NCBI GenBank assembly: GCA_904063045.1
Contig: CAJFCJ010000002.1
Span: 3,343,891 to 3,407,890, forward strand
Reading direction: 5' to 3'
From: Dimorphilus gyrociliatus
Taxonomy: Eukaryota > Animalia > Annelida
DNA: 64,000 bases
Below the pieces are notes generated by a model. It was not told where the DNA came from. It saw nothing but the letters and a program-made list of their open reading frames with translations, and made no database searches. Positions 9,269 through 54,737 of this stretch are shown piece by piece. Position 1 is the stretch's first letter, and every line of letters begins with the position of its first letter. The translations under genes were made by a program, and so were the position numbers.

Positions 9269-10485
9269 AATTTGCAGAAGAGTTTTTTTGCTATCTGGCT
9301 ACAGGTTGGTTTTATTTTATAATGTACGTATGTACTATCTATGCAGGCTTCAAGTTCGCGCAAGAAGGATCAATGTTTGCAGGTTTTTAAACGATAGGTG
9401 GCTCTGCAAAAAGAAGGCCTTGATGATTAGCATAGTAGCTGTAGTCTTTCAATGAATTTCACTTTATCATAATCAAAAGGCCTATAAAAAAGTAATATTA
9501 AGTATAAATGTTTAATCATTGCAAGGACAAAATCATCTTCATCTAATTCTTTATTGCAGCAATTTTATTATAACAGCAATATATTTTGCTGCCCAAGATT
9601 TATGTAGGTTAAAATATAAATAAGAAATATCAATTAAATTCAATAAGCGTCTTAAATTAAAGACGTAGATAATATAGAAGAATGCTTTATATTCTTTAAG
9701 TTTAAATTTAGAAGTCTATCAGTTAAACAAAACAAAAGTAAAGATTTTAAAAATATGCAATTTACTAAAATATCTACTGTTGCAGTACAGTTACAGCATA
9801 CAAAAGTTACGTTGCTTGCGCCATCTAGTACCCTATTAAAATAATAGTTTAGATTTTTATACGTACAGCATACAATTATCAGTCTATTAGATAAACTTGG
9901 GGTCTTTATTTCTTATAATTATCATTTATTTGACATTGCATTATATTTGAGTTGTTTCGGCGATATTCATATGTTGTAGGTCTTTGTAAAGAAATGATAC
10001 AGACAAAGAATTTTAAGACACATTTAGAGTTTTCTTAGCAAACTAATGAATATATTTATAATCATCCGATAATGGTTTTTACATTAACTTTCAGCTGGTA
10101 ATTAGTTGAAAATTAGATTATTTTTTTTAGTAAAACAGTTTTCTTTTCATTATAAAAATGTCAATATTTATTGGACTTTTTCCAACAATTTTGATGATAA
10201 CAACAATAAATATACTATATATATATACTGTATATATAAATATATAGCATTTAGATAAATTAGCAAACAGTTTTCGTTCATTATCGTATTAAATATAAGT
10301 TATCTTATAAACTTTCTTATCGATATATTATAGAATAAAAAAATTAACTTGAAAATCGATTTACTGTCAAAGAACGATGTGATAGGGAATGTGATATAAA
10401 GATAATTGAATTTGAAGTTTCTTTTTCTTGTTGAGTATAGCACCAAGATCATTTTTACATGAAGAAAAATGTGAATAGTATTACA

Positions 10486-13400
10486 CTAATCTAATTTTTG
10501 AATCGTGCGGAAGATATTTAATAATTCTGAAAAATTAATAGATTTCAACGCTTTTTCTCTATCCTCGTTGCCTGGCTTTTTCCTTGTACCATCCCTACAG
10601 GAAATCATTTTCTTATAGATATATATTTACAGTTTAAAAGGATTTTACAATGTATCACTTACATGAAGAGCGATTGAGGTGGAATGCACTGTAATCTTGT
10701 TTGAAGTGTTTGAAATGCAACACTTTGTGGTAGTAACATTAAAATTCCGTATAAACTCTCAACAAGATAAGGATAGTGTCTAGCTTCTAACAATTGCATT
10801 CGTAAAACTGTTGAAAAAGAAAGAAATGTAAAAATTATGAAAAAATAGAATATTTGTATATTAATATTACATGCAAAAATTGGAGATTCTACTAATTGGA
10901 CAAGCCTGTCCAATTGTAACAATAGATCGACAGTAACGTTCATTTCGCTCACTGCTCTAATCAAGTAGGCTGAGTGCGAATACATTTGAGACAATAGACA
11001 AAGCGCAATAACTGCGAAGGAGTTGTGACAAAATGCTTTATAGAGTATCACAAATAAATCAGCAGCATAGTCGTCCCTTAATTCTCTGAGAACAGTTCGA
11101 ACTTTGTGTAGTTCACTAGAAGTTAAGAGAATATAAGCCAACATTTCAGTAATGTCAGCTGCGAATTGTTTTTCTTTATTATGTGTCTCTAACTTTAAAA
11201 TAATAAGCGCTAAGCACTTGTATATATTTTCAGCACCGAGATAAATGCAGATCTGCCTAATAATTATCATCCCCTTGCCATCTTTCTTGTCCAAAAGTGT
11301 TACATCATTTTTAAATAATTGAATAATTTTTATCATGAAACATGTAAAGTATGCGTTATGTTCATGAGAGTTTTGTAAGTCTGCTAGCACTTGTTCTGGA
11401 ATGTCCATATCAAACTTAGGAGGGACTTGACGTCCAAATGATGATGAAGAAATGTCACTCAGAACCTCTATTGTTAAGTATATTACTCCTTCATCTGGGT
11501 CAGATAAGGCTGACATGAGAAGAGGAAAGAGGTTTTCCAAGTGTCTTAAAACTCTTTGAGGTACTCGTTTCTGAAGATGGGCGATCCAATGCAAAGCAGC
11601 AATCCTAGTTGCTACAGATTCGTGCGCCATCTGATGAGTTAAAGCAGAAACAACTGCTGTCATGTTAAAATGATAATCATCTTTTATAGCGGGAGATCTG
11701 TAAAGCAATAAAAATATATTAAAATAGGAACTAAAAGGGAATATTAGCAAATGTGTAATTACTTGTCTAATTCAACTTCATTGGGGACAGGTCCTCCATC
11801 ATAAGAAACTTGTTCTTCATTCTCGTTGTCAGGTTTATTGTCCTCATCAGCTGCAGCTGCTACTGATGATTGTTCATCTAAACAAAAATTTTATAACTAT
11901 TACAATTTGTTTACAAAAGCGCTAAAAATTGTTCCCAACTATTTAAAAAATTACATACTCGCTAAAAATTACTGAATTACGTCTACTTTAAAAAAACAAT
12001 TGAAATACTATGAGATAAAAATTGTCATAATCGATCTTATCTTTCTCTCATTTTAATAAAAACTTCAATGATTTTAATATTATAAATTTTAGTATGTTTA
12101 ACAAGCAGAATTTATAAAAAAAAAACAATTATAAGAAACGGAACTTAATATATGGAAATAAAAAAAAAACCAAGTCTAATTATATAAAATAAGTCAACTA
12201 TAGATGGCAGATACAAAAGGCTAACCTCGTCTTCCAGGAATATAACGAGACAATCATTTAATCGCATAAAATTATTTCCTACTACTAATTTATATGGTAT
12301 TAAATGATTTTTTTTCATAAACTTTTCAATTACTCTAAATGCTAACCAGTATATATGGCTATTTCCTTTTCCAATAGTTAAACATAGGTAAAAGGTAATA
12401 TTATTACTTTTAATTTGATTTTTCTTAATTAATCATCGTTAGATGCACAATCCTTTCATCGTGTATGGATATATTTTAATATTGACGATATCATCATTAT
12501 ATAGAACAACTACTACCATATAGTTTTTTATAATTACAAGATATTCTTTTAGTATTTGAGTGAGTATATTAACTCGTGTATAATTGAGAGTATGTTAGTT
12601 TGTAGGAGAAATAATAAAAGTTAGAGAGATATCTTGATAAGTCTTTAATTGACAAATTATTTTACTGTTTCGTGACGTTGACTAATTTGTTAAAAAATAC
12701 TTAATTTTGTGAGACTTAATTAATTTCTCCTGCTTACCCGCACTTAAGGGATTATCGTCGTCATCGGTTAATAATTTCATTATACTAGCTTGAACCTTAT
12801 CAGCCCGATCTCTAACCTCTGAAGAGAAAGAAATTACGAATTATAGGGTAATTTTATATCCAAAATCTTCTTCTAAAATTTCTTTATTTTTTAACGTGAG
12901 TATAGTTAAAAAAATTTTGATTGAGCTCATGGCACATTACCGTTCTTATTGCTTTCCTCGTAGGCAAGACACGGAAGTAAAGAAGATATAGTGCTAGCTA
13001 TAACAGGAAGGATAGCATCCCTTCCGCCCAATTTTACAAATTCTTCCAGCCAGTTGATAGCCATAGATTGTATTCCAGAATCTGTTGATATAGAAATCGT
13101 TTGTTTTTGATAAGAAAAAATGAGAGTAGAAATAATTAGTAGAATTCTTACCACTACTCTGACAATGTAACAAAATAATGTTGACCATAACGTGATAATC
13201 AACATTTTTACTTTTACCCTCCGAAATATTTCTTAAAAGTTTCCTTAGGCATTTTTTACATCTGATAAAAAAGAAGGAAATACTTTAAAAGTATATCTTT
13301 GATTTATTTTATATAAATAATTACGCTTGCTTGACATCCTGATGATTATCACCCAATATTTGGAACAGACCATCAAGCAATTGAGGCAAAAATACTATCA

Positions 13401-15349
13401 TATCAATATCTGGTACGTTGTCCAGTTCATCAATCTTTTTAATCAATAACATATATTGTTAGATTTTATGTTATATAAGCGCTCAATTATTTTAAATAAT
13501 AGTATACCCATGAAACTATAAACATTCTAGTATATTGGCCTCGATTGTAGATTCTTGTTCTTAGTTGATTAATTAGATCGACCAAATTCATATTTGGACT
13601 TGCAGTGAGAACATCTCTAACTAATACATTTAAAAGTCCACTGCCATTTCTAACATGTCCATCTGGATCTGCTGCCAACTGAAAAAAAGGCATTCAATTT
13701 AATTACTTACGCTTCGTATGAAAACTAAATAGGAAAGCAGCTGCAGATCGACACCAATACGTTTGTCAATAAAGTAATAAATCAAGTTTGCGAATTTGTG
13801 TCTTTATCAGACTTAAAGATATGATAGAACGGAGAACCAAAGTAAAAAGACTTAAATATCAAGGCGTTTAGGCATTCTGTGTATCTTGGTCAAAGCATAA
13901 CCAATAGTAAAATTTATAAGCATGTTTTATACAAATGGATCATCCGTTTAAAGACGGGATACGCAATCCCTCAACTTAAAATAATATTCAACATTAAAGC
14001 ATGACTAGAGAATGAAATTATATATTGGCTTATTTAGCAATTTGTACTTAAGTGTATATACAAGTATATATATATATATATATATATACAGTATATAAAG
14101 TAAGTTTATTTATTTATTAGTATTTAGCTATTACAGGCCCAAAGCTATAATATTAATAGTATATTTAAGAACACATATACTATCCTCCACTTACTCATCT
14201 ACTTTATAAAAACCGAAATTGCCTCTTACTTTCGCAAAGCGAATAGAGCGGGAAAATGCTTTATTTTAGAATTCTAATTTAAAAAAAAATCTATATATAA
14301 GAATAATTTATATCGATTTTCGTTAAGTTTTCAGTTAAACGTAAAATGCGCAGTCCTTCCTAAAATGAAAAAGCCGTAAATCATGCCCAAAATTATATAT
14401 TTAAATAATATTTCGAACCTACTGGAAAGTATACTTTTGAGTTCAAATTCTACTAAACTAATTATTTACTTTAACTTATAATTTATTTTTCATATTAGAT
14501 GGAATAAGGAAGCAATAAATCCTAGTAACATATGATTGCTGGTAGCACAGTTACAATCTGACGCAATATGTCTTACCCGACTCAATCCATCAAAAACCTC
14601 ATTAAAATGAGGCAGAAATCCATCTCGTGCAATTTTAATGATATTATATAAAGCCTCGCATCCAAAATAGCGAACATTTCTATCCGAATCATGAAAGCAT
14701 GTTAAAACTGGCTCTATTAGTTTCGAAATAAATTCTTTCGACTCCTGAAATTAAACAAATAATAAAAATATTGAAACTTATTCAATTAATTATTATAGAG
14801 CGCTAGTACGGTGTATAGGAGAGTAAATATTGCAGTCGCGCCCTAGACACCAATATGAGCACAGAAACGCAATACAGCTATAAACTTTTACCTGCAAACG
14901 ATTGCGGAAGGTTTGTCTATTTTACATTATAAATTTTCTATGAAATTAAGTCTAGGTAGTGTTGTATTTTAATTTATTATAAATATTGCCGTCATTTAAG
15001 AAAAAACGAATGTAATATTTCAATGTTTCGCTTCCTATTTTCTGTAAGCAGTGGTAGTTTACACAAGAGAGTTTCTCTTAATATTTCTTCGTCTCCAAAT
15101 CAACAAACGTAATTAATCGATCTTTCAACGACAAACCCTCAGGCCAACAATATACCTCGTAACAATTGTATGAGGTCTCAGGTGAAACGCGAAGCCTTAA
15201 AGGGAAAACGCCGGGGCTGAGACGCAGATATGACCGCCTTAATATTCATTTCAAAGTAAAATTTCTATTCTAGAGAACTAAAAATTCCTACTTTAGAAAA
15301 GTAGAGATTGTATAGATATTAATATTCTAGATATATGCGGTATATACAG

Positions 15350-15381
<32 letters not shown>

Positions 15382-17201
15382 AATAGAGCAATTGATGTCT
15401 GCAGACGTCTACAGAGAAACGGCAAATAGCCAACAGGTTATACCAAATTTTCTCCTTTCTTGTCATTAAAAGGTCACCTTATCCAGGCGGGCAAAAAAAA
15501 TACTAAGCGATGGGAATGTAAATGTGCAGACGGTATTGCAGACTAGATTATCGATAGAGAGATTAAGAATGGGTTGAAAGAATTAGTCCTTTTTTAAATA
15601 TTCCTCTAAACTGACGATAAAAAGAAGTAGTTATTTTAACCGTTTAATAATGCACATAGTGTGTTTTTATCCTAGAATTAACTCGAACGGATAATTTTAA
15701 TAAATTTAGATGTTATAATAAATAAATATCAATATACATATAAATATAATTTAATGACTGGTTTCCTGAGTTAAGAGCAGTGTCCTTTATAACTTGACCT
15801 TTAAATAGATAGGTTAGATAATATTAGGCCCTCTTGAGTTTTTCTCATTAGAATGGGTAAAGATAGAAATGTTCCGACTTATGTTTTTTACTTACAAACA
15901 AATAGTAGCGACAAAAAACAAAATCACAGTTCGGGTCTAAGATAAAATCAATTCTCTTTACCCTAAATTTAGACCATTTTCGTAAATTTTCAAAAGAGAT
16001 TTTGTCCATTAAGGCCAATACTAGGATGTACACGAGTCAGAATTCTTTAACTAAATTTTTTCTCCTCTTTACTCCTTTTTAACTAAACGAGAAAAGTTAA
16101 ACGGCTAAATTGACCAATTCTATATGCTTAAAAAGAGCGAAGAAAGAGGGCAAAGACGCGATAAACATGCAATATCCAAGATATTTTTAAAGCTTTGAGT
16201 TTGTGTGAATTGAAGGGTAAAATATACTAGCGAAAGAAAACCATCTAATATCTATGAAGAAGGAAGAGAAAGGAGGATGAGAAAAAGTTCTATATAAGTA
16301 AAAGGACTTTAAGGATTACTTTTATCATCCACATCAATAACAGATAATGAATAACATATATTTATTTGTATACTTTATACTATTGAATAAAATGATATAT
16401 CTAACACAGCTATTTATTCATCTCACCATTCATCTGTAAATAATAATATACAATATTCTGCACCCAAGCATTTCATTATTATAGTAACTAATATTGCTGT
16501 TTTACCAGTTATTTCACATTACTAAGTGCAAAATTCACCTAGTTTTAGTTTTATAGACTTTATATACCTATTAGCAGCAAAGGACATGTCTGGCTGAAGG
16601 CTCAGGAAATGAGTCGGTGTTGGGAAGTCAATAAATTATAGAACTAAATTCGCTAATACCTTTTTAAATATTATAATTAATTATTATATAATTACTGAAT
16701 AAAAGTATTGTAAATATTGTCTATCGATTCTATTGATGATGTACTATTTATAAACAGCGGTTTGTAAGCTATACAGTATCACAAAAAGATATTGAAATTC
16801 GTTAACGAGATGGCTTACCTTTCCTAAAGCAGTTGTTGTTGCAGCAAGAGCTATTAATCCTCCTAGTCGAGTGTTTATATTATGTGACATGGCATAATCT
16901 CGTCCTAGTATATCAATTATCTGAGTGATTTGCTTTATTTCATTTTTCCTGACTAGATCTTTAACGATGCTAAAATATTTATTACAAGATATTAAAAATA
17001 CTAAATTGCATTAATCAATTAATTAGAGATCACAATGTAATAATACCATATATATAATCAAAATAGAAAAAAATTGTTGTCAAATAACCCTAATATCACT
17101 CACCGTTCGACTTCTAAAGCCGCTGCTTTACGTTTATCATAAATTTTGTCGCTTAATCCCCGAATAACCGAGGCTGGAAAAAATTCTTGAATAGATGACA
17201 T
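10486..17201 (-). CDS. VAC14: VAC14 PIKfyve-complex scaffold (HEAT repeats), about 11 exons
   Basis: Exon 1 (17201-17104) reads MSSIQEFFPASVIRGLSDKIYDKRKAAALEVER. Later exons give ...NTRLGGLIALAA, ...VRYFGCEALYNIIK, ADPDGHVRNGSGLLNVLVRD, ...DRLVQLVESPIFA, YPYLVESLYGILMLLPQS. The last exon (about 10594-10486) ends INFSELLNIFRTIQKLD*. Confidence 0.95.
14064..14097. repeat. (TA)n microsatellite in a VAC14 intron
   Basis: About 12 TA units followed by CAGTATATA. Confidence 0.9.
15341..15378. repeat. (TA)n microsatellite in VAC14 intron 2
   Basis: TATATACAG followed by about 14 TA units. Confidence 0.9.
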
Positions 17202-38296: not shown

Positions 38297-41200
38297 TTAA
38301 GTCACATTTGCTTGACTATTAACAAGCTCGAAAAACATTCCTTCTTTTCTTAAAAGTTCTTTCACTGTTCCGTATTCTCCTACTTCTCCCGAATCCATCA
38401 CGATAATCTTATCACTGTCCATAATCGTACTTAAACGATGAGCAATTGTTATTGTAGTACAGTCCTTAAAATGACATTTCAGTATATTTTGGATACACTT
38501 ATCCGTTTCATTATCGACATTTGCAGTTGCTTCATCAATTATTAAAAGATGACACTTTTTCAAAAGAGCTCTCGCTAAACAAATCAGTTGTCTTTCCCCA
38601 ACACTGAGATTTCGACCACATTCTGATATTGTAGAGTTTAATTGTTGTGCCGTGTTTCCAACTTTCTTATCGAGATAAACTTTTTTCAAGCTCATCCAAA
38701 TATCATCATCACAATACTCATCGAGAGGATCGAGATTCGATCGATAAGTTCCGGTAAACAGTATAGGATCTTGAGGAATGACCGATATAACGGATCGTGA
38801 ACATTGTAAATTCACATCAGTCAATATATTAACACCATCAAGAATAATCTCTCCTTCGACAGGACACATTCTGAAGAGAGCACTGATTAGTGAACTTTTC
38901 CCGGCTCCTGTACGTCCAACAACTCCAATCTTCTCTCCAGAAAGAATATTAACATTGATATTTTTCAAAGAATAAGGAAGACTCTCATCGTATCTCATGA
39001 ATACGTTTTTGATAGTAAGAGATCCATTCGAAGGCCAAGAATCTGAAACTGGTGGAAACTTTTTATCGGGGTCTTCTTCTGATTTCAAAGAGGAGTAATA
39101 CTGAATTCGCTCCACAGAGGTCATCTTTTAAATGTTTGAAAATTTTAATTAGTTTATGTATTAATGTGTAACATACCGTATTGTCAAAGTCTGAACACAA
39201 TTTTAAAGAATATTGGAATATTACAATCAAGTTATTCAGATACATTAATGTTAAACCTGCTATGGTTGGGTTTAAATAGGATGAAAATTTAAGGCAAGCT
39301 ATTGCTATACACATGTAGAATAGTAGGGTTACAGCAAAATAGACTTGCTGAAGAAATTTACTATAAGTTTCTTGTATGATTGCAATTGTTGTATGATTAT
39401 TGCTTGCGGTATAGAATTTTTTCAAAAATGTTTTCTGTTTCTGGAAACAGCGAATAACGATTAGGCCCTGTATTACGTTATCAATGTGCTCATAAATTGG
39501 TGTTCGTTGTTTCGCCTCCAATCTTTTGAATTCTGAACCTATCGGAGTTAGCTTTCTATAGAGTAGTAACATTGATATTACAAAAATAGACAAAGGTAGA
39601 AATAAAAGTGGAATGTTATATACTGCAAGAGCAACTGAGAAAACGATTGCTCCGACCCATAAAGTAATCTGCTCCAGAAGAGTGACGAGTAATGAGTCGA
39701 CAAAACCTAAATCTCTAGAGAATCTATTCAGTATTCTTCCTTTTGGATTTTTATGAAAAAACCCAAAAGGTATTTCCAATATTTTTTGGAACATTTTTTT
39801 ATGTAAATTCACTGAACAGAGAATAATATTGATGTAGTATGTAGACAATCGTCCAATTTCGATGATAGTTAGCGTAATTAAAATAATAGCAACGGTCATC
39901 AACATTGAATAATTAAGGTTTTCTACAGCAAATTGAGTTAGAACTTTATCAATCCAAATATAGATTGAAAAAAATATACCAAAGAGTAGCAGCGACATAG
40001 TTAATAATAAAAAACTTCCAGTTTTGAAGTAGTTAAAATACACTTTAAAGCCTGCAAATCCGCTGTTCATCTCCTCCTCTTCATGGAAAATTTCATTTTG
40101 ATATATTTTTAGATGTTGGATATTTTCAGTAAGCTCTTTACCTAAGTTATAGTCAGATTTTGAAATTATGTGACAGCATCCATCGATTACTTCATAGATA
40201 ATATGCGCTTCATTTAATAGATGAACTTGATGAGTTGTTAGGAAAATTACTTTGTTTTTTAAGAAGTCAAGAAAACATCTCTGAATTATTAGTTTCGTAA
40301 CTTTTTCATTAATAGCACTAAGAGGATCATCAAATACATAGAAAGTAGCCTTCCTATAGACAGCCCTAGCTAAGGAAATCCTTGCTCTTTGACCTCCGCT
40401 AAGCCTTTTTCCGTTTTCACCAACAAGAGTTTTATCCCCGTTCGGTAAATCAATCAAGTCCTTTACATCAAAAGATATAATTCTTTCAGATTTTATCTAA
40501 ATTTTTAAAATGTTACAAACTTTATCCAAACAGCAAGCAAAAAGTACTGATTTGTATCGTTCCGCATCAAATTTTTCATGGAAGAGGATATTTTCTTTTA
40601 TCGATGCATTAGTTAACCATGGCTCTTGAGGGGAATATGAAAATTTTAAACGAGAGCTCAGACGTGTAAAGGAATGAGGTAATTCATTGAGCAAATTCAA
40701 TAACAATGTCGTCTAATCAGAATAAATTCACAATAATTAAATCTCAATAATTCTACTACTAATTACTACAACCTTTCCAGATCCAACACGACCACAAATA
40801 CCAATAAACATTGGTTTTTTAGTTAAAGGAAAATGTAGATTGTTATAATTCACATTTTTAGGCTGACTTAAATTTTCAGTCTGAAAAAGATTACATAAAT
40901 AGTAATATGTTTTCAACTGTTCTATAAATACCTTTTCAATATTTGAAATACGTTCTTCAGAGACTTTTTCTAAAGAGTTCAAAAGATTCTACAATATTTA
41001 GGTTAAAAAGTTAAATTATGTTCTCTGTTCCTGTATTTTGTTTCTTACCGCTACTCTATTCATGGATTTCAAACATTCACTATATAAAAAAAAGGTATCT
41101 GGGAAATAATAGAATATCTCATTCTCCATTGCAACAATTATTGACATTAATCTTATGACAGAGGGAAGATTAAATGTATATTGGCTAGTCAATTTTGCAA

Positions 41201-42452
41201 CTAATATTTCGAAAAACATGACAAATTTTAAGCCAAATGAACCAATTATTCTGTATATTATTCTATATTTGTAACTACCAAGAATTTGCATTATTTCTTT
41301 ATTTCTTAAGTACTCTATCCTTTTACTAAAGTATTTTTCCCAAATCAACATTTTAATAATTTGAATGCCTGATAATATTTCGTTCATTAAGAGAATTCTT
41401 TTATCAGTCTTTTCTGCTATTTTAGATCTTTTGGTTCCTTGCTTAAATGCCAGAAATGATTGAATAGAAACAAGAAAGACAGTCGCAGATAAAAGTCCCA
41501 AGCCAACAATAGAACCATATAAGAAGGATATCATAGAAAATGATATAAGAATTAAGAATATGGCACCAAAGAAACTTTCACAATAATTGCACAAGAAGTT
41601 TATTCTTTCAATATCTGATGAGTATATCGACAATATAAAACCCGAAGTATACTGTGAAATCGTTTGGTAATCAATTTTTAGAATCTGGAATTTGAAATGT
41701 ATGGAATTACATCTAAAATATAAACTATTTATTTTGAAATCAATACTTTATAAAACAAACAACAACTTAAAGAACTTCGAACTTTAATACCAGCGCTAAT
41801 AAAACAAAGTGCACTATATCTTGAATTGATAGCGTCCATAAAAGAGCAGAATCCTTTATTAAATTAATAATAAATATCAAGTGAATTTTGGTAATATTGT
41901 AATTTTACCTAAAAGAACAACGAACGTGTACGAAAACGTAGTGACTCTTGTCTGAATGTCCATAATAATTCTTTGTAGTATAAACGGTAAACTTAGACGG
42001 AAAATAACCTTTAAAAGTAAACTATATTCATATTTGCTATTTACTTGTAAATTTGTTGACTTACGGATATAAATTTAAAAATTAATCCACTTATTATATC
42101 ATTTAACACCAATTTAAATATTCCATACATAATACGATTGTCTTTTTTTTTAAAGTCATTACTATATATCCCTATACCTAAATTTCTATAATTATCATTA
42201 ACAGAGATTATTTAATAATATAAAATGTAAAGTTACTTTGATAACTTCAGATGAAGATTGCGAGAAGAGAATTCGCTATGTAATGTAAAATTTAAGATAT
42301 TTTTTAATCTTTTCTTCGCCATAATTATCGGAATAATCCATCTGTGTATTAGAAAACATGTAAACGCTAACATATAATATTAATATTTTGTATATAAACC
42401 CCTGGGTATATTTCTGTATAAAGTTAGCGTGCTCGATTGGATGAACAGTCAT
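38297..42452 (-). CDS. ABCC4: ABCC4/MRP4-like ABC transporter (copy A)
   Basis: Starts MTVHPIEHANFIQKYTQGWIIP. Motifs GRVGSGKT, LSGGQRAR, YVFDDPLSAIN and GRILNRFSRD are present, and NBD2 is identical to copy B. About 11 exons that splice in frame by eye. Confidence 0.87.
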
Positions 42453-42707: not shown

Positions 42708-45700
42708 TTATAACGTTTCAACAAATTTATCTTTATCTTTTGAGATTGTAATATCTTCCTCAAAAAATAAATCTTTTATCAATGTTAAAATCTCAACGAA
42801 AAATGAACCATGTAACATCGTTGATTTTTCAATATTTTGTGATATTTTTGAACAGAAACTTGCTTCATCGGTATTTAAACAATTATCATCCGTTTCGTAA
42901 TCTGGAATATTGTCACCGTCTCTGTCAATATCATAAATATCTGGAATAAGATCGTTATCGTCATCATCATCTATATAATCTGGGATTCCGTCATTGTCAG
43001 AGTCTTTTTTTGTATCAATAAATATACTGGAAGACTTTCTTGTTGTTAAGCAGAGATTAGATTTTTCTAAATTGCCCTTTGAACTCGACTCTATAAAATT
43101 CATAGAGAGCTGTTTATCTAATATTAAGTGTTTAGCTATACTTTCAACTTCTAAATCAGAATCTTTTTCTATTGGAATGCCACCTTCGTCCCTAAATACC
43201 TCTGAAGATTCGTCTTCTGTTTCTAAATTATTTAATGCAGATTCCTCGCTTATCATTGCACCGTCATCGAAAGTTGTGGACTCTAGGATATTTTCGTTTT
43301 CTGTCTCAGCTTGTAAAGTGTTATCTTTTAAATTGTCGGGAACACTTTTCTCTTGTTCACCTGCAACAGAATAATCATATTCAATATCCTTTTTTTCATC
43401 TTTCCCTCCAAACAGTGACTGTTCCTCTTTGAAGTTGTCTGGAATGCCCAAAATCGTATCTTCAAGCTCAAGTTTTTCAAAGTTACTTTTTCCCTCCGTA
43501 TCCTTTGTAGGAAAATCTTCAGCTAAACCTTTACCTGAAAAAATTTGTATTATCGTAATTTACAAGATTAATTTCCTTTTTTCAGTGAAAATATAAATAT
43601 ATCTAATAGAACAGAAAAAAAGAAATACCTGCAACGTCAGGCGTTTCCTTTAAAATGTCAATGTCTAAATAATCTGGCACACCATCTGAATCAGAATCAA
43701 CATCTAAATCCTCAAAAGTGGAATCAAAAATATTATTATCAATTCTACTTTCCTCTTCAAGTACATCGAAATCATAATCAGCCTTTGGTAATTTTAAACT
43801 TTCATCAGTTAAAATTTCATCAACATCCACAGGTATTTTAGTTACATTTTTAGAAGACCGCTGACTATTGTCTTTGATTTCGACACTTTCGACACTGTCT
43901 TCAACTTCTACAATATCTACCATCACATCATCAAGAGTTTCGGGTTTCAGTAATTCAATTTCCTTATCACTATTAAAATTATCAAAGTGATCAGGACTTT
44001 CGTCATAATCTTTTTCATCACCTAAATAATCTGGAATTCCATTTCCATCTGAATCTTTCAAAATATTGTTTTCTGAATCTTTAGAAATTGTGCTTTCTTC
44101 CTGGTCAATCTCTTTTTTCGTTTTCTCAATAAAATCATTATCTTCCTCTAAATGATCGGGTATTCCATCGTTGTCATCGTCATCATCTAAATAATCTGGT
44201 ATTCCATCTCCATCTGAATCCTTCATCATGTAATCATCTTCTTTAGACTTTGTTTTCAATTCTTCATTTTCATTCCTTTCGTTAACATCATTGTTATCAT
44301 CTAAATGATCGGGTATTCCATCGTTGTCATCGTCATCATCTAAATAATCTGGTATTCCATCTCCATCTGAATCTTTAATCATGTAATCATCTTCTTCAAC
44401 TTTCGCTTTCAATTCTTCGTCACTTTCTTTCATTTCTTTAACATCATTTTTTTCATCTAAATGATCAGGCATTCCATCGCTGTCGGAGTCCCTCATGATG
44501 TAGTAGTCTTCATTATGCTTTGTTTTCAATTCTACATTTTCTTTCATTCCGTTGACATCATTGTTATCATCTAAATGATCGGGTATTCCATCATTGTCAT
44601 CATCATCGTCTAAATAATCTGGTATTCCATCACCATCGGAATCTTTGATCATATAATCACTTTCAATTTCATCACTTTTAAGGCTCTTGTCATTATCTTC
44701 CTGGGCATCTTTTGTGTCCTTGCCTGGATAGCCCTCGTCTAAATAATCAGAAATTCTATCGCCATCACTGTCTTTCGTCATGTTATCATCTGCATCCTCG
44801 GAGCTCTTTTCTTCTTCATTAACTTTTGCATCGTTAAATTCATTCTTGTCATGTAAAAGGTCAGGAATTCCATCATTATTATTATCATCATCTAAGTAAT
44901 CCGGTATTCCGTCACCGTCTGAATCTTTAATCATATAATTGTCTTCTACTTCATATTTGGAAGCTAAAAACCTTTCATCATTTTCTTTCTTTTCTTTAAA
45001 ATCATTTTCGCCTTCTGGGTGATCATATATGCCCTTATTATCATTATCATCATCTAAATAATCAGGTATCCCATCACCGTCTGAATCTTTAGTCATATAA
45101 TTATCTTCGTCTTCATGTTTTGAGCTCAATTCCTTTTCTTCATTTGCTTTCTTTTCGTCATTGTTATTATCTGTGTGATCAGGTGTTTCATCATTGTCAA
45201 TATTGGCATCTAAATGATTTGGCATTCTGCCACTATCTGTGTTTTCAAGCTTGTAATCACCTGCTTCATATTTTGAGCTCAGCTCTTTTACATTATTAAT
45301 CTTTTCATCAACATCATTTTTATCATCTATTTCATCAGGAATGCCATCATTGTCGTCATCATCGTCTAAATAATCTGGTATTCCATCACCGTCCGAATCT
45401 TTAATCATATAATCTTCTTCTTCATCCAGCTTTGTTCTAAATTCTTCACTTTTACTCTCTTTGGTTTCCTTAGCATCATTTTTATCATCTATTTCATCAG
45501 GAATGCCATCATTGTCGTCATCATCGTCTAAATAATCTGGTATTCCATCACCGTCCGAATCTTTAATCATATAATCATCTTCTTCATCCAGCTTTGTTCT
45601 AAATTCTTCATTTTTACTCTCTTTTGTTTCCTTAGCATCATTTTTATCATCTATTTCATCAGGAATGCCATCATTGTCGTCATCATCGTCTAAATAATCT

Positions 45701-48700
45701 GGTATTCCATCACCGTCCGAATCTCTAATCATATAATCATCTTCTTCATCCAGCTTTGTTCTAAATTCTTCACTTTTACTCTCTTTGGTTTCCTTAGCAT
45801 CATTTTTATCATCTATTTCATCAGGAATGCCATCATTGTCGTCATCATCGTCTAAATAATCTGGTATTCCATCACCGTCCGAATCTTTAATCATATAATC
45901 ATCTTCTTCATCCAGCTTTGTTCTAAATTCTTCATTTTTACTCTCTTTTGTTTCCTCAGCATCATTTTTATCATCTATTTCATCAGGAATGCCATCATTG
46001 TCGTCATCATCGTCTAAATAATCTGGTATTCCATCACCGTCCGAATCTCTAATCATATAATCATCTTCTTCATCCAGCTTTGTTCTAAATTCTTCACTTT
46101 TACTCTCTTTGGTTTCCTTAGCATCATTTTTATCATCTATTTCATCAGGAATGCCATCATTGTCGTCATCATCGTCTAAATAATCTGGTATTCCATCACC
46201 GTCCGAATCTCTAATCATATAATCATCTTCTTCATCCAGCTTTGTTCTAAATTCTTCACTTTTACTCTCTTTGGTTTCCTTAGCATCATTTTTATCATCT
46301 ATTTCATCAGGAATGCCATCATTGTCGTCATCATCGTCTAAATAATCTGGTATTCCATCACCGTCCGAATCTTTAATCATATAATCTTCTTCTTCATCCA
46401 GCTTTGTTCTAAATTCTTCACTTTTACTCTCTTTGGTTTCCTTAGCATCATTTTTATCATCTATTTCATCAGGAATGCCATCATTGTCGTCATCATCGTC
46501 TAAATAATCTGGTATTCCATCACCGTCCGAATCTCTAATCATATAATCATCTTCTTCATCCAGCTTTGTTCTAAATTCTTCACTTTTACTCTCTTTGGTT
46601 TCCTTAGCATCATTTTTATCATCTATTTCATCAGGAATGCCATCATTGTTGTCATCATCATCTAAATAATCTGGTATTCCATTACCGTCCGAATCTTTAA
46701 TCATATAATCATCTTCTTCATCCAGCTTTGTTCTAAATTCTTCATTTTTACTCTCTTTTGTTTCCTCAGCATCATTTTTATCATCTATTTCATCAGGAAT
46801 GCCATCATTGTCGTCATCATCGTCTAAATAATCTGGTATTCCATCACCGTCCGAATCTTTAATCATATAATCATTTTCTTCCTCATTCTTCGATCTCAAT
46901 TTTCTCCCTTCACTCTCTTTCGTTTCCTTAACATCGTTTTCATTATCTATCTTATCAGGTATACCATCATTATCATCATCATCGTCTAAATAATCTGGTA
47001 TTCCATCGCCATCTGAATCCTTGGTCATGTAATTACTTTCATCTTCATCACTTTTGTGGCTCTCGTCATTATCTTTCTGTGCATCTTTTGTGTCTTTGCC
47101 TTGATAGTTCTCGTCTAACTTATCAAGAATTCTATCGCCACCACTCTCTTTGATTATGTTGTTAGCTTCACCTTTTGATCTCTTATCTTTTTCAGTACCT
47201 TTTTCATCATTAAATTCATTCTTGTTGTCTAATTGATCAGGTATACCGTCATTGTCATTATTATCGTCTAAATAATCTGGTATTCCATCACCATCGGAAT
47301 CTTTGATCATAAAATCTTCGTTTTCCTCATTTGTGTCTCTTTCATTATCTTCCTGCGCATCTTTTGTGTCCTTGACTTCATAATCGTCATCCAAATAGCC
47401 TGGAATTCCATAACCTTCGGTGTCTTTTGTTATGTTATCATCTTCGTCCTTTGAGTTCTTTTCTTCTTCCTTACTTTTTGCTTCATTAAATTCATTCTTG
47501 TCACCTAAATGATCAGGAATTCCAGCATTATCATTATCATCGTCTAAATAATCCGGTATTCCGTCACCGTCTGAATCTTTAATCATATAATCATCTGTTT
47601 CATCATGCTTTGAACTTAGTTCCTGTTCTTTAATCTCTTTCGTTTCCTTACTGAAACTGCCGTCCTCTGAATAATCTGATACGCCATTGTTGTCCTCATC
47701 ATTATCCAAGTAATCGGGTATTCCGTCACCATCTCTATCTTTAATCAAATTGTCTTCATTTTCTCCATTTTTGGTGTTTTTTTCCTTCTTTTGGACTTGA
47801 CCCTTTGTTTCCCTGGCCTGATTGTTTTCATTTAAATTTTCAGAATTTCCATCATTGTCATTATCATCGTCTAAATAATCCGGTGTTCCATCAGCATCTG
47901 CATCTCTAAAGGTATAATCGCCTTCTTCATGTTTTGAGCTCCACTCTTCCTCTTCTATTTCACTTTTTTCGTTTACATCATTGTTTTCATCTAAATGATC
48001 AGGTATTCCATCGTTGTCATCGTCATCATCTAAATAATCTGGTATTCCATCTCCATCTGAATCCTTCATCATGTAATCATCTTCATTAGGCTTTGTTTTC
48101 AATTCTTCATTTTCTTTCATTTCGTTAACATCATTGTTATCATCTAAATGATCGGGTATTCCATCATTGTCATCGTCATCATCCAAATAATCTGGTATTC
48201 CATCTCCATCTGAATCCTTCATCATGTAGTCATCTTCATTAGGCTTTGTTTTCAATTCTTCATTTTCTTTCATATCGTTAACATCATTATTATCATCTAA
48301 ATGATCGGGTATCCCATCATTGTCATCGTCATCATCCAAATAATCTGGTATTCCATCTCCATCTGAATCCTTCATCATGTAATCATCTTCTTTAGGCTTT
48401 CTTTTTAATTCTTCATTTTCTTTCATTTCGTTAACATCATTGTTATCGTCTAAATGATCGGGTATTCCATCATTGTCATCGTCATCATCTAAATAATCTG
48501 GTATTCCATCGCCATCGGAATCTTTCAGCATGTAATCGTCTTCAACTTTTGTTTTCAATTCTTCTTCATTTTCTTTCATTTTTTTGGCATTATTATCGTC
48601 GTCCAAGTGATCTGGAATTCCATCGTTATCGTCGTCATCGTCTAAGTAATTTGGTATTCCATCACCGTCTGTGTCTTTAACCATATAATCATGTTCATCA

Positions 48701-49880
48701 TTTTTGGAGGTCATTTCTTGTTTCTCGACTTTTTCGTTAGTGTCATTGTCATTCTCTAAATCAACATGCACATCGTCATCATCAATATCTCTGAAAACAT
48801 TATCAACTTTCTTTTTTTCATTGTTTTTTTCTTTTTTTTCTTTGGTGTCACTGTTGTCGTTTATATAAGGCGGTGTTCCGTCATCCAGCTTCGATGAATG
48901 ATAAGTTTTTCCTGAATTAGACGATCTTTTCCTCTGATCTCCTTGATACTCAAGAAGTATTTCTGTAAGCTCGTTGTTCTCTAAATCAGCAGGTTCCTTA
49001 TTAAATATTTTGCGATTCTCACTTTCCAAGACTTGATCAAATTTCTTTTTTTCGTCGTATTTGTTTTGTACGCCATCGTTATCATCATCATCCATGTAGT
49101 TCGGTATACTATCACCGTCATCATCCTGCATAGTATAGTTTTCTTCAGATGATTTACCGTCACTACGATTTTCTTTGTTTTCATTATTTTGAGCTTCCTC
49201 ATTATCTTGCGAAATGTAATCATCTTGTTCAGAATCTAAATGATTTGTCCTTTTTTCAATGTTTTCATGCTCAAGTTTGCTATTTCCAGTATTAATTGAA
49301 TCATCCTCATTAAACTTGTCTTTGGAAGCTGACTCTTTTTCATTATCTTCATATAAGTAATTCGGAGAGCCGAAATCTTCTTCGTAGTTGTTCGAAAGCA
49401 AATCTTGAAAGACAATTTCAATAAGAAACAACATCATAGGAATGGATTAAAAACCAACCACTTTTTTGAGAATCGGGGAATATATAGTGTCTGTGTAGCG
49501 AGGAATCTGTATCGAGATAATCCGGTATTCCATCTCCGTCTTCATCTTCTTCTTCATCCGGTATTCCTAAAATACGAAAGAAAAATCTACAGGGTTGCTC
49601 TTTAAGTATAAATGTTATCTGCACACCGTCACCATCATCGTCATCATCCAGATAATTTGGTATCCCGTCACCGTCCGTATCCTAGTTAGGACGCGGCCAT
49701 AAAAGAGAATGAATTTGAATGGTCGGTGCATTGGAGAAAACTCACCTCTTCTAGATAATTAGGTAAAGCGTCCAAATCTGTCCTAAACTCGTCTTCGGAA
49801 GTAGAATAATAACCTGTATCTTCTTCCGTTTCTTCAATCGAAAGCAATTTTCTTTGACAAAATTCGCAAGTATTCGTTAC
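42708..49880 (-). CDS. Giant Asp/Glu-rich protein with about 25 canonical and several degenerate Cys-free thrombospondin type-3-like repeats ([22 protein letters not shown]); 5' end unresolved
   Basis: Exons 49880-49746, 49681-49627, 49566-49459, 49403-43629 (5775 nt) and 43534-42708 join in frame (6900 nt, 2299 codons plus stop). The DxDxDGxxD motif is the TSP3 Ca2+-binding signature. There is no Met in the first three exons, and an in-frame TAG (the acceptor) lies immediately 5' of 49880. Confidence 0.85.
45313..46872 (-). repeat. Coding tandem array, about 10 x 162 bp (54 aa)
   Basis: TTCATCAGGAATGCCATC recurs at 45331, 45493, 45655, 45817, 45979, 46141, 46303, 46465, 46627 and 46789, a period of exactly 162. 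Confidence 0.95.
47980..48695 (-). repeat. Coding tandem array of about 153-bp (51 aa) units; related units recur at about 44150-44660
   Basis: ATCCTTCATCATGTA occurs at 48061, 48214 and 48367 (period 153). The protein unit is [51 protein letters not shown]. Confidence 0.9.
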
Positions 49881-49897
49881 CTAAAAGTTTGTAAATA

Positions 49898-49927
49898 TAC
49901 TGTATGTATATATATATATATATATAT
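49898..49927. repeat. (TA)n microsatellite between GRP94 and the acidic-repeat gene
   Basis: TACTGTATG followed by about 10 TA units. Confidence 0.85.
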
Positions 49928-50169
49928 CAGTTTGTTCTTATGTTGGCTAAGAGAGTGTTAGGTGTTGTTTTTTCAAATCAGCAAAATATATATTTTCAGA
50001 TTAATATTAAAATGTAGAAAAAATGTATTGAACACATATCATTAATAATATATTTCATGAGGAACAGGAATAAACAACAACAAACAATTGTAAAAACAAC
50101 AAAAAAGCATGACTAGAAATATATGACTTTAATGACTAGAAGAATTTTATTAATATTTTATCTCTAATA

Positions 50170-53100
50170 TCATAGCTCTTCCTTTTCCTGAAAAAGGGAT
50201 ATCATGCGGTTAAATCACTTCAAATTGATCTTAATAAGGTATAGTTTTGTTATCTTACCTTTGTTTCACTTTCGTCATCAATGAATTCCTCTTTAGATGC
50301 GGTAGCATCGTCAGCCTTGTCAGAATCATTGTCAGCTTCTTCGGTTCCATCGGCGTCTGTAACGCTTTCATCCATAACTTCATCGTCATCTTCTGGCTCA
50401 TCTTCAATCGGCTCATTCAAAGGAATTTCCATAGATAATCTCAACATATTCTCTATTCTCTGCGAAAAACCGGCTGTATCGACGAGTGAAAAGCCTGATC
50501 TGAGAACAGCTGATTCATAGAGAACAGTAGCTAAATCCTTTGTAGTTGCATCCTCTCTATCTACTGCTGCTCTCTCCTTTAATTTTTTCACCAGAGGATG
50601 TCTTGGATTCATTTCAAGTATCTTTTTCTGTCCGCTATAATAATCATTTCCAGTGTCTTTAGATTTTTGATATGCCTGTGATTTCATTATTCTTTCCATA
50701 TTTCCAGACCAGCCAGATGTTGTAGCAACCAAAGCACAAGGAGAGGTAGTCAATCGATCAGAAACAATAGCCTTCTCTATTTTACCAGGTAGAACATGAT
50801 TCATCATGTATTCCATCAGAGGCTCATATTCTCTCTCTAAAGCCTCCTTTCTTTGTTTAGCTTTTTCCGAATCATTCAACTTAACTCCTTCTTTTGCGAC
50901 GTTCTGAAATTTTTTGCCCTCAAACTCAGGTAAAGCTTGAATGCAATATTCATCAACAGCTTCAGTTAAGTAGAGAACTTCATAGCCTTTCTTCAATAGC
51001 TTTTCAACGAAGGGAGATTTTTCTCCTTCCTCTCTTGAAGTTCCAGCTACATAATAAATTGAATCTTGTCCTTCCTTCATTCTCTCTACATAGTCACCAA
51101 GCGAGGAAAGTTCGGCGGCAGAGTGAGAAGATTGAAATTTCAAAAGTCTTGATAATCTTGTACGATTTGCGTGATCTTCAATAACTCCTAGTTTGATATT
51201 TGTACTAAATTCTTTCCAAAATTGAGCAAAATCCTCTGTGCTCATTTTCTTAATCATATCTAAGGTTTTCCTAACTAATTTCTTTTTAATAACTTTTAAT
51301 AGTTTATGTTGCTGAAGCGTTTCTCTAGACACATTAAGGGGAAGATCATCACTATCTACAACTCCTTTCACAAAGGAAAGATACTTGGGCATCATTTCTT
51401 CAAAATTATCAGTGATAAATACTCTTCTCACATACATTTTTATCATATCAATCTTTTTTCCGTAATTTGTAAACATGTCTTGAGGGCTAGTTTTCGGGAT
51501 GAACAATATGGCTTTGAAAGTTACTTCACCTATAAAATGAAAACTCTAAGTAGTAAAAAGTCACATACAAAATACTTTTAAATATAAAAAAATAAAACCT
51601 TCAGCTGTGAAATGAGTATGAGACAAAGGTGGCTCATATTCTTTTGAGAAGGACTTGTAAAAATCTACATACTCGTGATCTTCTATTTCTCCAGATTTTC
51701 TTGTCCATATGGGTTTATTATCATTTAAGAGTGTCCAATCCCAAATTGTTTTGTCAACATAACTACTAGTCTCGCCTCCTTCGCCATCATCAACTTTTTC
51801 TTCAACTTGTTCAACCCTCGAATCCCAAATATAAATATTAAAATTTATAAATTGTGAATATTTCTTAATAAGGTCACGGATAGTCGTTTGTTCAAGATAC
51901 TCTGAAGCTTCTTCTTTCATATGTAGAGAAACAGTGGTACCTCTTGTCAGAGTCGTCCCTCTTGGATCCTTTGAAACGGTAAAGGAAGAAGCATCTGACT
52001 CCCAAACATATTGTTCGTCATCATTACTCTTTGACGTAACCATAACTCGATCGGCAACAAGAAATGACGAATAGAAACCAACTCCAAATTGACCAATCAT
52101 ATCATTCATTTCTTGAGACCCTGCCTCACTTAATTTACTAAGAAATTCCGAAGTTCCAGACTTGGCAATTGTACCCAATTGTTTAACAAGGTCATCTTTT
52201 GTCATCCCTATACCACTATCAGTTATATGAAGCATTTGATTCTCTTTATCAGCTCGAATTTTTATCGATAATTCGTCAAAGTCACCTAAAGCTTTTTTGT
52301 CGGTCAACGAAAGTAAACGAATTTTGTCGAGAGCATCTGAAGCATTCGAAATTAATTCACGCAGGAAAATTTCCTTGTTTTTGTATAAAGAGTTAATAAT
52401 CAGCTTCATCATTCTATCAACCTCAGCTTGAAAGGTGAACTTTTCAGCTTTATCTCGCATTTCCTTTAGTTGAGAAACATTTAGCTCATCTATTTTTATA
52501 GCCTCCTCCTCCCTATGTAAACAGTATTTTATTAGGTACAAAAGTGTGCGAATAATGTGTTACGTAGGAAGTTTACCGATTTATTTACAAAAGAGTTAAA
52601 AATTACTTAAATTTAGCATAAGGAACAGCTTATGTAGAGTTAATATACCCTAAAGGTGAAAATTTACAATCATACACTATACTGACTATCTGGTTTCAAT
52701 AAATAATATAGGCTAAATTTCCACGAATTTTCTTAGTGGAAACGGATACGTTAGATTTTTTTTTTACTCTTTGAAGCAATCTCTTCAAGTTTTTCTTGGA
52801 AAAAGCGAATTAAAGCAAATAAAAATATTTAAGATATGAAATTTAATTGAATAAAAAATCATTATTGATGCACAATAATTATTTATGAAATAAAAAATGT
52901 TTACCTTTTAACAGTTTCATCATCAGTTTTTGACGCATCTCGACTTTTACCTATGTCATCATTTGCTGTTGGTGTCGACTCTAAATCATCTTCAGCCGAA
53001 ATTATTACTGCAACGAAAATTCTACGTTCAATTTCTCATAAAAAAAAACTAAAACCAAGTAAAATTCAAAAATAGAATTCTATTTCTAGAACTCTTCAGC

Positions 53101-53227
53101 ATCTCAAAGCAAGTGAAAAAGTTAATGCTTTAGCAATAGTTAGTTGTAATTTTGTTAAATTTTATCTATTTTACTGACCAGGACAGAAAAAAATACAAAA
53201 AACGAAAATTAGAGCGAACTTCTTCAT
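50170..53227 (-). CDS. HSP90B1: Endoplasmin / GRP94 (ER Hsp90), 784 aa, 5 exons
   Basis: Exons 53227-53179 (signal peptide [16 protein letters not shown]), 53007-52905, 52512-51599, 51529-50259 and 50187-50170 total 2355 nt. Motifs [31 protein letters not shown] and [10 protein letters not shown] are present; the protein ends EKEEL*, with AATAAA about 20 nt after the stop. Confidence 0.97.
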
Positions 53228-53304
53228 GACCGACAAGAAATGATGAATCTTCTCTAATTGACAGAAGTCGTGCCTATTTTGGCTAGGATTCGCCGCCCAA
53301 AGCT

Positions 53305-53362
53305 ACCTTCCAATCAGCGTTCAACAACGGGCGTCACGTGGCCTACTTTTAAACCAATCAAT
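53305..53362 (-). promoter_or_regulatory. Probable GRP94 proximal promoter: two CCAAT boxes flanking GCCACGTGAC (XBP1/ATF6-type ACGT core)
   Basis: CCAAT occurs at about 53310 and 53356, with GCCACGTGAC on the - strand at about 53333-53342, 80-130 nt upstream of the ATG. There is no exact ERSE (CCAAT-N9-CCACG). A perfect GTCACGTGAC palindrome also lies at 53517-53526. Confidence 0.4.
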
Positions 53363-54737
53363 TCTAGACAAATAATGTAAATGTTGCTGCCGTCTTTTTC
53401 CTGACATGGCTTAACTCTATTGGCAGTTTTGTTTTGCATAAGCCTACTTTAAGAAATATAGCATCATGTGAAGCGTGATCATGTACCATTTGTATTTGAA
53501 ACGAATAGAGAGCTAGGTCACGTGACGATCGAGTATTCCAAAACTCTTTCGTATATGTGAGCAAGTTCGAAATATTTAAATGGGAAAGTTGTCTTAGCAA
53601 AAAATTAAATTTTAATTTTTGCCTGGGAAGACATATTTTGTTTTAAAACAGAAAAAACCCTGTAATACGAAAATATATATGATAATTTCTATATCCGGTT
53701 ATTACAGGCACGTGCTCCTTCCCTAAAGATGATGAAACCAAAGACGATCTCTCTTCAAAAACATAAAAATGATCAATTCAACAGGTTAAATAATTTTCCT
53801 TACTATTTTTATTGGTACAATGGTTTAGTCGATAAAATCATCTGCTTATATAATATGATCCATTGATTCCTAGTAGAAATAGCGACACGCATAGTTAAAG
53901 CATAAAATTTTTCCCTTTGACAAATAGTAGTAATAAAATTCACGAAATCTAACGAAACCATCTAAAAGTGAAAGTTTATTTTAATTATAGCGTTTTCTCA
54001 ACTCATACTATATTACAGATGGCGTGACTGATAGCAGTAATTCTGTTGTTAGCTGTTAGAATCAAGAGCGCAGGCTGTGTTTGTATACTTTTATGCTTGG
54101 GAAAAGAAAATAGTTTGGACATTCAATGCTAATCAAACGCTTTTCTGTGACTTTGCTCACTGGTTGGTTGTTGTATTGTTGATTCAGTGGCAATTCCGAG
54201 TTATAGATAATACTAGCGTAGTTTTGGTCGTCCACTCTTGGCTTCTTTATAACTTTGTTTATCATAATCTGCATAGAGGGTCCTCCATTGATAAATTATC
54301 TTCTGAAGGACACTCCTCGCAGTCTAAATACTTAAACATAGTTTTCGATGCATTCATTAAGGGTTTAACTTTATATACTTTATTAGATATATAATTTTAA
54401 TAACTAATCTCTCTAAGAGAATTTTTAACTGTTTAAATTATAGGCTGTTTAATGATGGATAGGACAATTTAATATGTATTGGTACATTTTATTTCTTTTG
54501 TATATTTAATGGAGTAGAATGGAATTACTCGAAAAAATCTATAATTGTTGTATACAAATAATTGAACTTAAGTCTTTTAAAGAAAAATACTCGTATAGAA
54601 CGGAAAATGAGGTTTTCCTATGATAATCTCAATCCTCTCACTACTCAATGACCTTGATGCTATTTGCTTACTTTATTTTATATAATAATCTCAAATCTTT
54701 TTTCTTTCTGAATAGCTTCATTCAAGATATAGATGTC

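Follow-up and report, generated by a model that had tools for sequence, protein, structure and literature searches.

In a 64,000-nucleotide (nt) stretch of the genome of the annelid Dimorphilus gyrociliatus (contig CAJFCJ010000002.1, positions 3,343,891 to 3,407,890 of the forward strand; hereafter the window), a gene for the endoplasmic reticulum (ER) chaperone GRP94 is closely followed, on the same strand, by a giant gene of acidic repeats. GRP94 is taken to be a uniform protein, about 800 amino acids (aa) long, that ends in KDEL and folds a small set of clients, and it is a known binder of luminal Ca2+. Here we report a spliced contig in public RNA data that joins the fourth exon of the GRP94 gene directly to the first exon of the acidic gene. 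We propose that the two genes probably form a single transcription unit with a choice of two 3' ends, the distal of which would trade the ER-retrieval signal of the chaperone for a tail of about 260 kDa.

Organization of the locus

The window region has a G+C content of 30-35 %, and its introns are 55-71 nt long with GT..AG ends; the genome paper of the species gives a median intron of 66 bp (PMC7854359). Only two public sequencing runs contain the stretch, a coral metatranscriptome (X1) and a run of 2017 (X2), and both are stored as contigs. The features of the GRP94 and acidic genes all lie on the minus strand, and coordinates are window positions:

53179..53227, minus strand: GRP94 exon 1, with the ATG at 53227; its joint to exon 2 is present in an X2 contig
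52905..53007, minus strand: GRP94 exon 2, acidic segment preceding the N-domain; read from sequence, with joints in X2 record 11
51599..52512, minus strand: GRP94 exon 3, ATPase N-domain and start of the middle domain; Pfam and sequence, covered by X2 record 9
50259..51529, minus strand: GRP94 exon 4, last common exon; Pfam HSP90 at 557 bits, X2 record 9
50170..50187, minus strand: proximal alternative last exon, EKEEL and stop; read from sequence, predicted to be used, with homologous small exons in paralogs and flukes
49881..50258, minus strand: 378-nt intron of the long isoform (GTAAGA...TTTTAG); joint in X2 record 9
49746..49880, minus strand: tail exon A, phase 0 at both ends; sequence and X2 record 9
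49627..49681, minus strand: tail exon B, first repeat unit; sequence and X2 record 9
49459..49566, minus strand: tail exon C; sequence and X2 record 9
43629..49403, minus strand: giant tail exon, about 1,925 aa; sequence, with 49403-48481 covered by X2 record 9
42708..43534, minus strand: last tail exon, ending ...FVETL and stop (42710-42708); read from sequence

The Hsp90 domain set of a GRP94 is present, consisting of the HATPase_c N-domain and the HSP90 middle and C domains. Exon 1 encodes a hydrophobic N-terminus that resembles a signal peptide. Exon 3 matches the Pfam families HATPase_c, HATPase_c_3 and HSP90 and retains GQFGVGFYS and the other nucleotide-binding motif intact, and the GRP94 body is apparently functional. 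Exon 4 ends in ...ESETK at the phase-0 donor AAG/GTAAGA (50259). The four GRP94 donors have phases 1, 2, 1 and 0, and the donor of exon 4 is the only one in phase 0, as the original prediction, made from the letters of the window alone, had stated.

Downstream of this donor lie two possible continuations. The nearer is the 18-nt EKEEL exon, which encodes a KDEL-type ER-retrieval signal; it has a strong polypyrimidine acceptor and an intact reading frame, and an AATAAA stands 19 nt past its stop (50151-50146). The farther is exon A, which begins after a TTTTAG acceptor, contains no Met, and has the TAG of that acceptor as the in-frame codon just upstream; its donor is GAG/GTGAGT and it carries the motif CxxC[QR]R[KL]L. 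These properties had been noted before and all hold, as does the spacing of about 290 nt between the two genes, which comes to 289 nt from the GRP94 stop (ending at 50170) to 49880. The 378-nt intron between exons 4 and A encloses the EKEEL exon, its poly(A) signal and an ATG at 50110, the only local alternative start that had been put forward. This ATG lies past the AATAAA, opens a hydrophobic peptide and, as had been remarked, is followed only by a poor GT donor. Within the same intron, a (TA)n microsatellite at 49895-49937 stands immediately 5' of the exon A acceptor; being a repeat, it was left out of read matching. The last tail exon ends without a KDEL-type signal and is followed by an AATAAA at 42634-42629.

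A spliced contig joins the GRP94 body to the acidic tail

The X2 contigs were placed on window positions 48000-53500, in a layout of which one joint is unlisted. Record 9, which is 3,370 nt long with a mean depth of 49.7 and zero mismatches to the window, consists of the blocks 52476-51597, 51527-50255, 49876-49745, (49680-49626), 49565-49459 and 49403-48481, with seven joints that each have GT..AG ends. The joint 49876/50255 is recorded as skipping 378 nt, with CT..AC ends and a cut of +4; shifted by 4 it becomes 50259^49880, with the intron GTAAGA...TTTTAG. The EKEEL exon is bypassed in this contig, and exon 4 is joined to A, B, C and then the giant exon. This is the junction that the original prediction had proposed and had named as the one to look for in RNA.

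Only 6 nt are ambiguous at the 50259^49880 joint, so a shared 31-mer cannot have produced it, and the further canonical joints in record 9 indicate that the contig derives from spliced RNA. Since exon 4 has a single copy in the genome at 100 % identity, a processed pseudogene is excluded as the source. Upstream, record 11 holds the joints 53007/53179 and 52511/52904.

A separate X2 contig linking exons 1, 2 and 3 has a depth of 51, near that of the contig running from exon 3 to the tail, and an unspliced piece across intron 2 has a depth of 4.3, contig depth being a rough hint of abundance from which isoform ratios cannot be measured. No X2 contig falls on 49881-50254. These near-equal depths, the empty spacer and the low depth of the unspliced piece suggest that the long form was more than an occasional by-product in the X2 sample. 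The EKEEL exon is likewise covered by no X2 contig (50024-50207 is empty), and this says little, because short terminal branches such as the EKEEL exon with its short 3' untranslated region (UTR) are typically trimmed from de Bruijn assemblies. An independent start at ATG 50110 was rejected, given the empty spacer, the poor donor and the lack of anything like it conserved.

The X1 contigs comprise near-identical pieces of exons 3 and 4 and are silent on the junction. They are 99-100 % identical to the worm exons over window positions 50602-52123, which places the worm or a very close relative in the coral sample. Two further X1 contigs lie over the T-rich spacer past the GRP94 poly(A) signal (window 50088) and lack 3 nt of a GTT run; they could stem from pre-mRNA or from a short isoform with an extended 3' UTR, or they could be unrelated and match by low complexity.

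The predicted long form and the nature of its tail

Exons were searched separately for homologs and the spliced frame was checked by script. With the predicted splice 43629/43534 joining the giant exon to the last tail exon, exons 1-4 and the tail form a frame that is open from the ATG at 53227 to the stop at 42708, corresponding to 3,078 aa, 352 kDa and an isoelectric point near 4; a frame of about 3,080 aa, made by skipping the EKEEL exon, had been foreseen. The predicted long form would consist of a signal-like peptide, the intact Hsp90 body and a tail of 2,299 aa whose C-terminus, FVETL, is no retrieval signal. The predicted short form has 784 aa and ends in EKEEL.

In the tail, Asp makes up 24 % and Glu 12 % of the residues (36 % together); its net charge is near -583, and 5 of its 2,299 residues are Cys. 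It contains 55 DxDx[DN]G motifs and 24 copies of D-x-DG[DN]GIPDYLD. The giant exon is built of about 28 Cys-free units of 51-54 aa, each a repeat core followed by a charged spacer, and a genome-wide search found no such acidic repeats elsewhere in the worm genome. Pfam gave no family at E <= 0.01 for the giant exon as a whole. When single units were tested, eight of eight matched TSP_3 and/or TSP3_bac on their DxDxDG part, at 12-19 bits, and a 500-aa piece of the tail scored 14.5 bits against these families (PF02412/PF18884), for which the cut-off is 25. A 200-aa piece of the corresponding tail of the fluke Schistosoma bovis clears both thresholds (46.7 and 40.2 bits) and also touches two other Ca2+-binding families. 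A sequence search of the PDB with 500 aa of repeats returned nothing at E <= 0.01. In the type 3 repeats of the thrombospondin signature domain, the DxDxDG-type motif wraps around and coordinates Ca2+; on the strength of this motif, the worm tail is probably a Ca2+ binder.

Three GRP94 genes in the worm

The worm genome holds three GRP94 genes, the window copy and two paralogs. The window GRP94 is 71 % identical to the first paralog (C8), 65 % to the second (C7) and 46-48 % to cytosolic Hsp90s.

C8:1093422-1097666: GRP94 paralog with the body nearly in one exon (749-aa open frame); small last exon KKDEL and stop
C7:3139090-3143307: GRP94 paralog with the body nearly in one exon (764-aa open frame); small last exon RTRIEL and stop

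The RTRIEL end of C7 is unusual, and in all three genes the retrieval signal sits on a small exon of its own. In a tree of 14 rows, with thin taxon sampling, the three worm paralogs group together (support 86/93) and separately from the fluke clade; the window GRP94 falls among endoplasmins bearing HDEL or KDEL, apart from cytosolic Hsp90 with support of 100/100. Branch lengths are 0.09 for C8, the shortest, 0.26 for the window copy and 0.23 for C7. On the simplest reading, GRP94 duplicated within the annelid lineage; C8 would be the housekeeping gene, and the tail would have stayed with the window copy. A further Hsp90-like open frame, very AT-rich and on a small contig (C275:13256-16708), is 37 % identical to GRP94 over 150 aa; its base composition suggests a contaminant or protist sequence.

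The same layout in trematodes

A search with the first 500 residues of the giant exon returned trematode proteins of 2,845-3,259 aa as its five top matches (E from 6e-156 to 3e-140). These come from Paragonimus (three species), Opisthorchis and S. bovis, all carry Hsp90 Pfam domains, and they outscore every bacterial TSP3-repeat protein. Shorter and weaker fluke matches (1,925-2,612 aa) from S. rodhaini, S. spindalis, S. mekongi and Calicophoron rank below many bacterial proteins. The reverse search, for proteins of at least 1,703 aa with a GRP94 body, added a 'putative endoplasmin' of S. mansoni (1,743 and 2,126 aa), S. japonicum, S. curassoni and Trichobilharzia, its remaining matches being tandem Hsp90s or evident mis-fusions. 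Cluster members include a Clonorchis 'Endoplasmin' of 2,863 aa and eight isoform models of S. rodhaini (1,691-2,617 aa), which suggest extensive alternative splicing within the fluke tail. The union of GRP94 with a tail is annotated in more than 12 fluke species.

The trematode giants go by the names 'endoplasmin' or 'putative thrombospondin' and include Smp_030300, which is the same as Smp_340630, KAG5444747.1 (Clonorchis), T265_15515 (Opisthorchis) and PHET_03766 (Paragonimus). Their order is signal peptide, full GRP94, acidic linker, CPTCRRLL, Cys-bearing TSP3 repeats and many further TSP3-like repeats, without KDEL. They differ from the worm in the Cys-bearing repeats and in long basic linkers rich in Ser and Lys. 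S. mansoni has a single listed endoplasmin gene, whereas the worm has three GRP94 genes.

The original prediction had suggested looking at adjacency and phase in related species, and the DNA of three flukes has the same layout. The last common GRP94 exon closes between two codons and is followed by GTAAGT; an acceptor and a small in-frame exon ending in KDEL and stop stand about 100 nt further; and the giant model splices to a point 8-20 kb downstream, compared with 378 nt in the worm.

Opisthorchis viverrini: small exon VGEPSNAKDEL, then AATAAA; giant model resumes about 20 kb on, opening DKENCPTCRRLL
Schistosoma mansoni: small exon ENQSSSPKDEL; giant model resumes about 8.5 kb on
Paragonimus heterotremus: small exon VSKSSDAKDEL; giant model resumes about 12.5 kb on, opening TNQSCPTCRRLL

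The motif CxxC[QR]R[KL]L opens the tail in the same place in both groups, as CEFCQRKL in the worm and CPTCRRLL in flukes. Shuffle tests of this opening motif gave 31 and 42 of 2,000 in two species and 384 of 2,000 in a third. Taken alone the similarity would be suggestive; in combination with the shared position and architecture it appears persuasive. A C-terminal helix motif was also considered as evidence of ancestry and was dropped on its weak shuffle scores. In a third organism, a eukaryote (ENA ERZ28675667 ctg711, 9932-15721), a 1,930-aa open exon of DSDNDGIPD... repeats is homologous to the giant exon and is preceded in frame by ESCEICEIKL, which has a CxxC motif like that of exon A.

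In the papers found, the fluke giant is listed rather than discussed. In a 2022 survey of schistosome heat-shock proteins, Smp_030300 (now Smp_340630) figures as 'endoplasmin precursor-like' among three Hsp90-family genes, and nothing is said of its size (PMC9559072). In a miracidium proteome, Smp_030300.4 is entered at 239.5 kDa and Smp_030300.3 at 197 kDa, each with 20 peptides of which one is unique, under the label 'Putative thrombospondin' with an InterPro TSP3 superfamily match, again without comment (PMC4723143). A literature search that left most subscription journals outside its coverage found no paper describing a GRP94 with a TSP3-like tail. The original prediction knew of no description of the architecture; this holds for discussion in the papers found, but the design is not unique to the worm, being shared by the fluke gene models.

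Discussion

We consider it likely that what look like a 'GRP94 gene' and a 'giant acidic gene' are transcribed as a single unit whose 3' end can be chosen in two ways. This reading draws on the junction contig of X2, the open frame, the Met-less and closed exon A, and the layout shared with flukes. Exons 1-4 would give both forms a common promoter and signal peptide and the complete GRP94 body. In the short form, the donor at 50259 would be joined to the EKEEL exon by removal of a 71-nt intron, and the transcript would end at the poly(A) signal 19 nt past the stop, giving a 784-aa chaperone retained in the ER. In the long form, the EKEEL exon and its poly(A) site would be skipped by joining 50259 to 49880, giving the protein of 3,078 aa and 352 kDa. 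The switch between them may be a competition of the proximal acceptor and poly(A) site with the distal acceptor. If translated, the tail could serve as a high-capacity, low-affinity Ca2+ binder within the secretory pathway, and dimerisation through the GRP94 C-domain would bring tails together in pairs. Without KDEL, the long form might be exported, or it might stay in the ER by associating with itself in a Ca2+-dependent way, in the manner of calsequestrin.

The nearest competing account of the window gene is that it makes the giant isoform only, with the EKEEL exon an unused relic and the canonical GRP94 role passed to C8. The lack of X2 contigs on 50024-50207 is in keeping with it, as are the about equal depths before and after the junction (51 and 49.7), the perfect KKDEL and shortest branch (0.09) of C8 and the faster evolution of the window copy (0.26). 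However, the polypyrimidine acceptor of the EKEEL exon is still strong and its frame intact, it still encodes a KEEL-type signal, and an AATAAA follows its stop by 19 nt; de Bruijn contigs usually lose short terminal branches, and one joint is unlisted. We hold this account to be unlikely. That the contig represents a rare read-through, or conjoined, transcript of two independent genes, with a fusion protein that has no role, seems highly improbable. Two units 289 nt apart on one strand of a compact genome could produce such a transcript, the contigs come from one run, and ATG 50110 begins a hydrophobic peptide. Yet in a conjoined pair the downstream gene has a start codon and a promoter of its own, and the only nearby ATG, at 50110, is without a usable donor. 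Exon A is Met-less and closed upstream, the spacer 49881-50254 has no X2 contig, the fusion contig is as deep as the contig of the GRP94 5' part, and the same union is annotated in more than 12 fluke species, after a small KDEL exon and with the same opening CxxC motif.

The geometry of a phase-0, Met-less acceptor 289 nt past an upstream stop on the same strand is also the classical one of an operon, in which exon A would be the trans-splice acceptor of the downstream gene and a spliced leader would supply the AUG, as in flatworms. The contig that is cis-spliced to 50259 and the genome paper, which reports no enriched 5' leaders and takes the species to have neither operons nor trans-splicing (PMC7854359), led us to reject this reading; among the contig ends listed, none hangs loose at 49880, 28 further ends lying outside that listing, and we give the idea almost no credence. 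A last alternative accepts the long isoform and disputes its age: annelids and flukes would each have captured a TSP3-like gene downstream of GRP94. Acidic DxDxDG repeats are of low complexity and match many bacterial proteins, the short-motif statistics are modest, and only two phyla are sampled, with their GRP94 bodies in separate clades. Against such convergence stand the same host gene, the same phase-0 donor before a small KDEL exon, the same repeat consensus, the same CxxC[QR]R[KL]L opening of the tail and the placement of KDEL on a separate small exon in all three Dimorphilus paralogs. Independent capture therefore strikes us as rather improbable.

Several observations weigh against a single gene with two ends and an old tail, and temper our preference for it. 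The junction occurs in one run only (X2), whose library type is unrecorded and which is available as contigs; use of the EKEEL exon appears in no contig, and an extra internal promoter is conceivable. RNA support stops short of the splice 43629/43534 and the 3' two-thirds of the tail, and the long form of the worm is a prediction at the protein level. The fluke giants are gene predictions, and one 'unique' peptide for each of two S. mansoni giant isoforms is only suggestive. The C-terminal helix motif shows a weak likeness between worm and fluke (97 and 257 of 2,000 shuffles reach the score) and no similarity to Clonorchis, and no GRP94 is found within 37 kb upstream of the giant exon of ctg711, a result to be read against fluke introns of up to 20 kb. 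As to the nature of the tail, the worm units remain below the Pfam cut-off (12-19 bits against 25), five Cys leave no room for a classical disulfide-bonded TSP3 wire, and an AlphaFold2 model of three units from a 12-row alignment is poor, with a mean predicted local distance difference test (pLDDT) score of 54 and a predicted template modelling score of 0.19; its motif parts reach a pLDDT of 60-72 and its spacers stay below 50.

The proposed pair of isoforms can be set beside known systems. With canonical GRP94/endoplasmin (HSP90B1), the predicted short form of the worm would share the signal-like peptide, the Hsp90 N, middle and C domains, the acidic C-terminal stretch and a retrieval end, EKEEL; the canonical protein has about 800 aa and a KDEL end, whereas the RNA evidence from the worm is chiefly for a form without the retrieval signal and with 2,299 additional acidic residues. 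The tail resembles the type 3 repeats of thrombospondin and COMP in its tandem DxDxDGxxDxxD motifs, exactly where the Pfam TSP_3/TSP3_bac matches fall, but its units lack paired Cys and EGF- or lectin-like flanks, have charged spacers and score below threshold. Calsequestrin, a high-capacity luminal Ca2+ buffer without KDEL, offers a functional analogy only: the predicted long form would likewise be very acidic, luminal and KDEL-less, but the worm tail has no thioredoxin-like domains and no sequence relationship to calsequestrin (no Pfam match). For the choice of 3' end, a close parallel is the IgM heavy chain, whose secreted and membrane forms arise from alternative last-exon and poly(A) choice: splicing to distal exons has to compete with a proximal last exon that brings a poly(A) site of its own, and the outcome alters the sorting information at the C-terminus. 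The worm switch differs in that it would drop the ER-retrieval signal of a chaperone and add a 260-kDa module.

Since an annelid and trematodes share it, the simplest reading would make the GRP94-tail design old in Spiralia. We go further only tentatively, in a proposal that we rate as a serious possibility somewhat short of an even chance: GRP94 in the annelid-flatworm ancestor may already have been a two-product gene, making an ER-retained chaperone and a KDEL-less form of about 300 kDa with a giant, TSP3-like, Ca2+-binding tail, and may have been kept so for more than half a billion years, with a dedicated Dimorphilus paralog now making mainly the giant form.

Downstream of the tail's 3' end, the window also holds, on the minus strand at 38300-41750, an ABC-transporter-like gene whose nucleotide-binding domains carry LSGGQ.

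What is new here is a GRP94 with a giant acidic tail, supported by RNA, in an annelid; the design was already present, unremarked, in fluke annotations. For the annotation of the worm, the separate 'GRP94' and Met-less 'acidic protein' models should be merged as isoforms of one gene. For schistosomes and liver and lung flukes, the single inventory of Hsp90-family genes found gives endoplasmin, in S. mansoni, as the sole ER member and as a drug-target candidate (PMC9559072), so whether a giant isoform exists and what it does affect the understanding of that target. A conserved isoform that exchanges its retrieval signal for a calcium-motif tail of about 260 kDa would be a new class of GRP94 product, and it would give a testable handle on calcium storage or export in some invertebrates. 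If the ancestral gene indeed had two products, it would reveal an undescribed link from ER chaperoning, or from a GRP promoter inducible by Ca2+ depletion, to the bulk storage or secretion of Ca2+.

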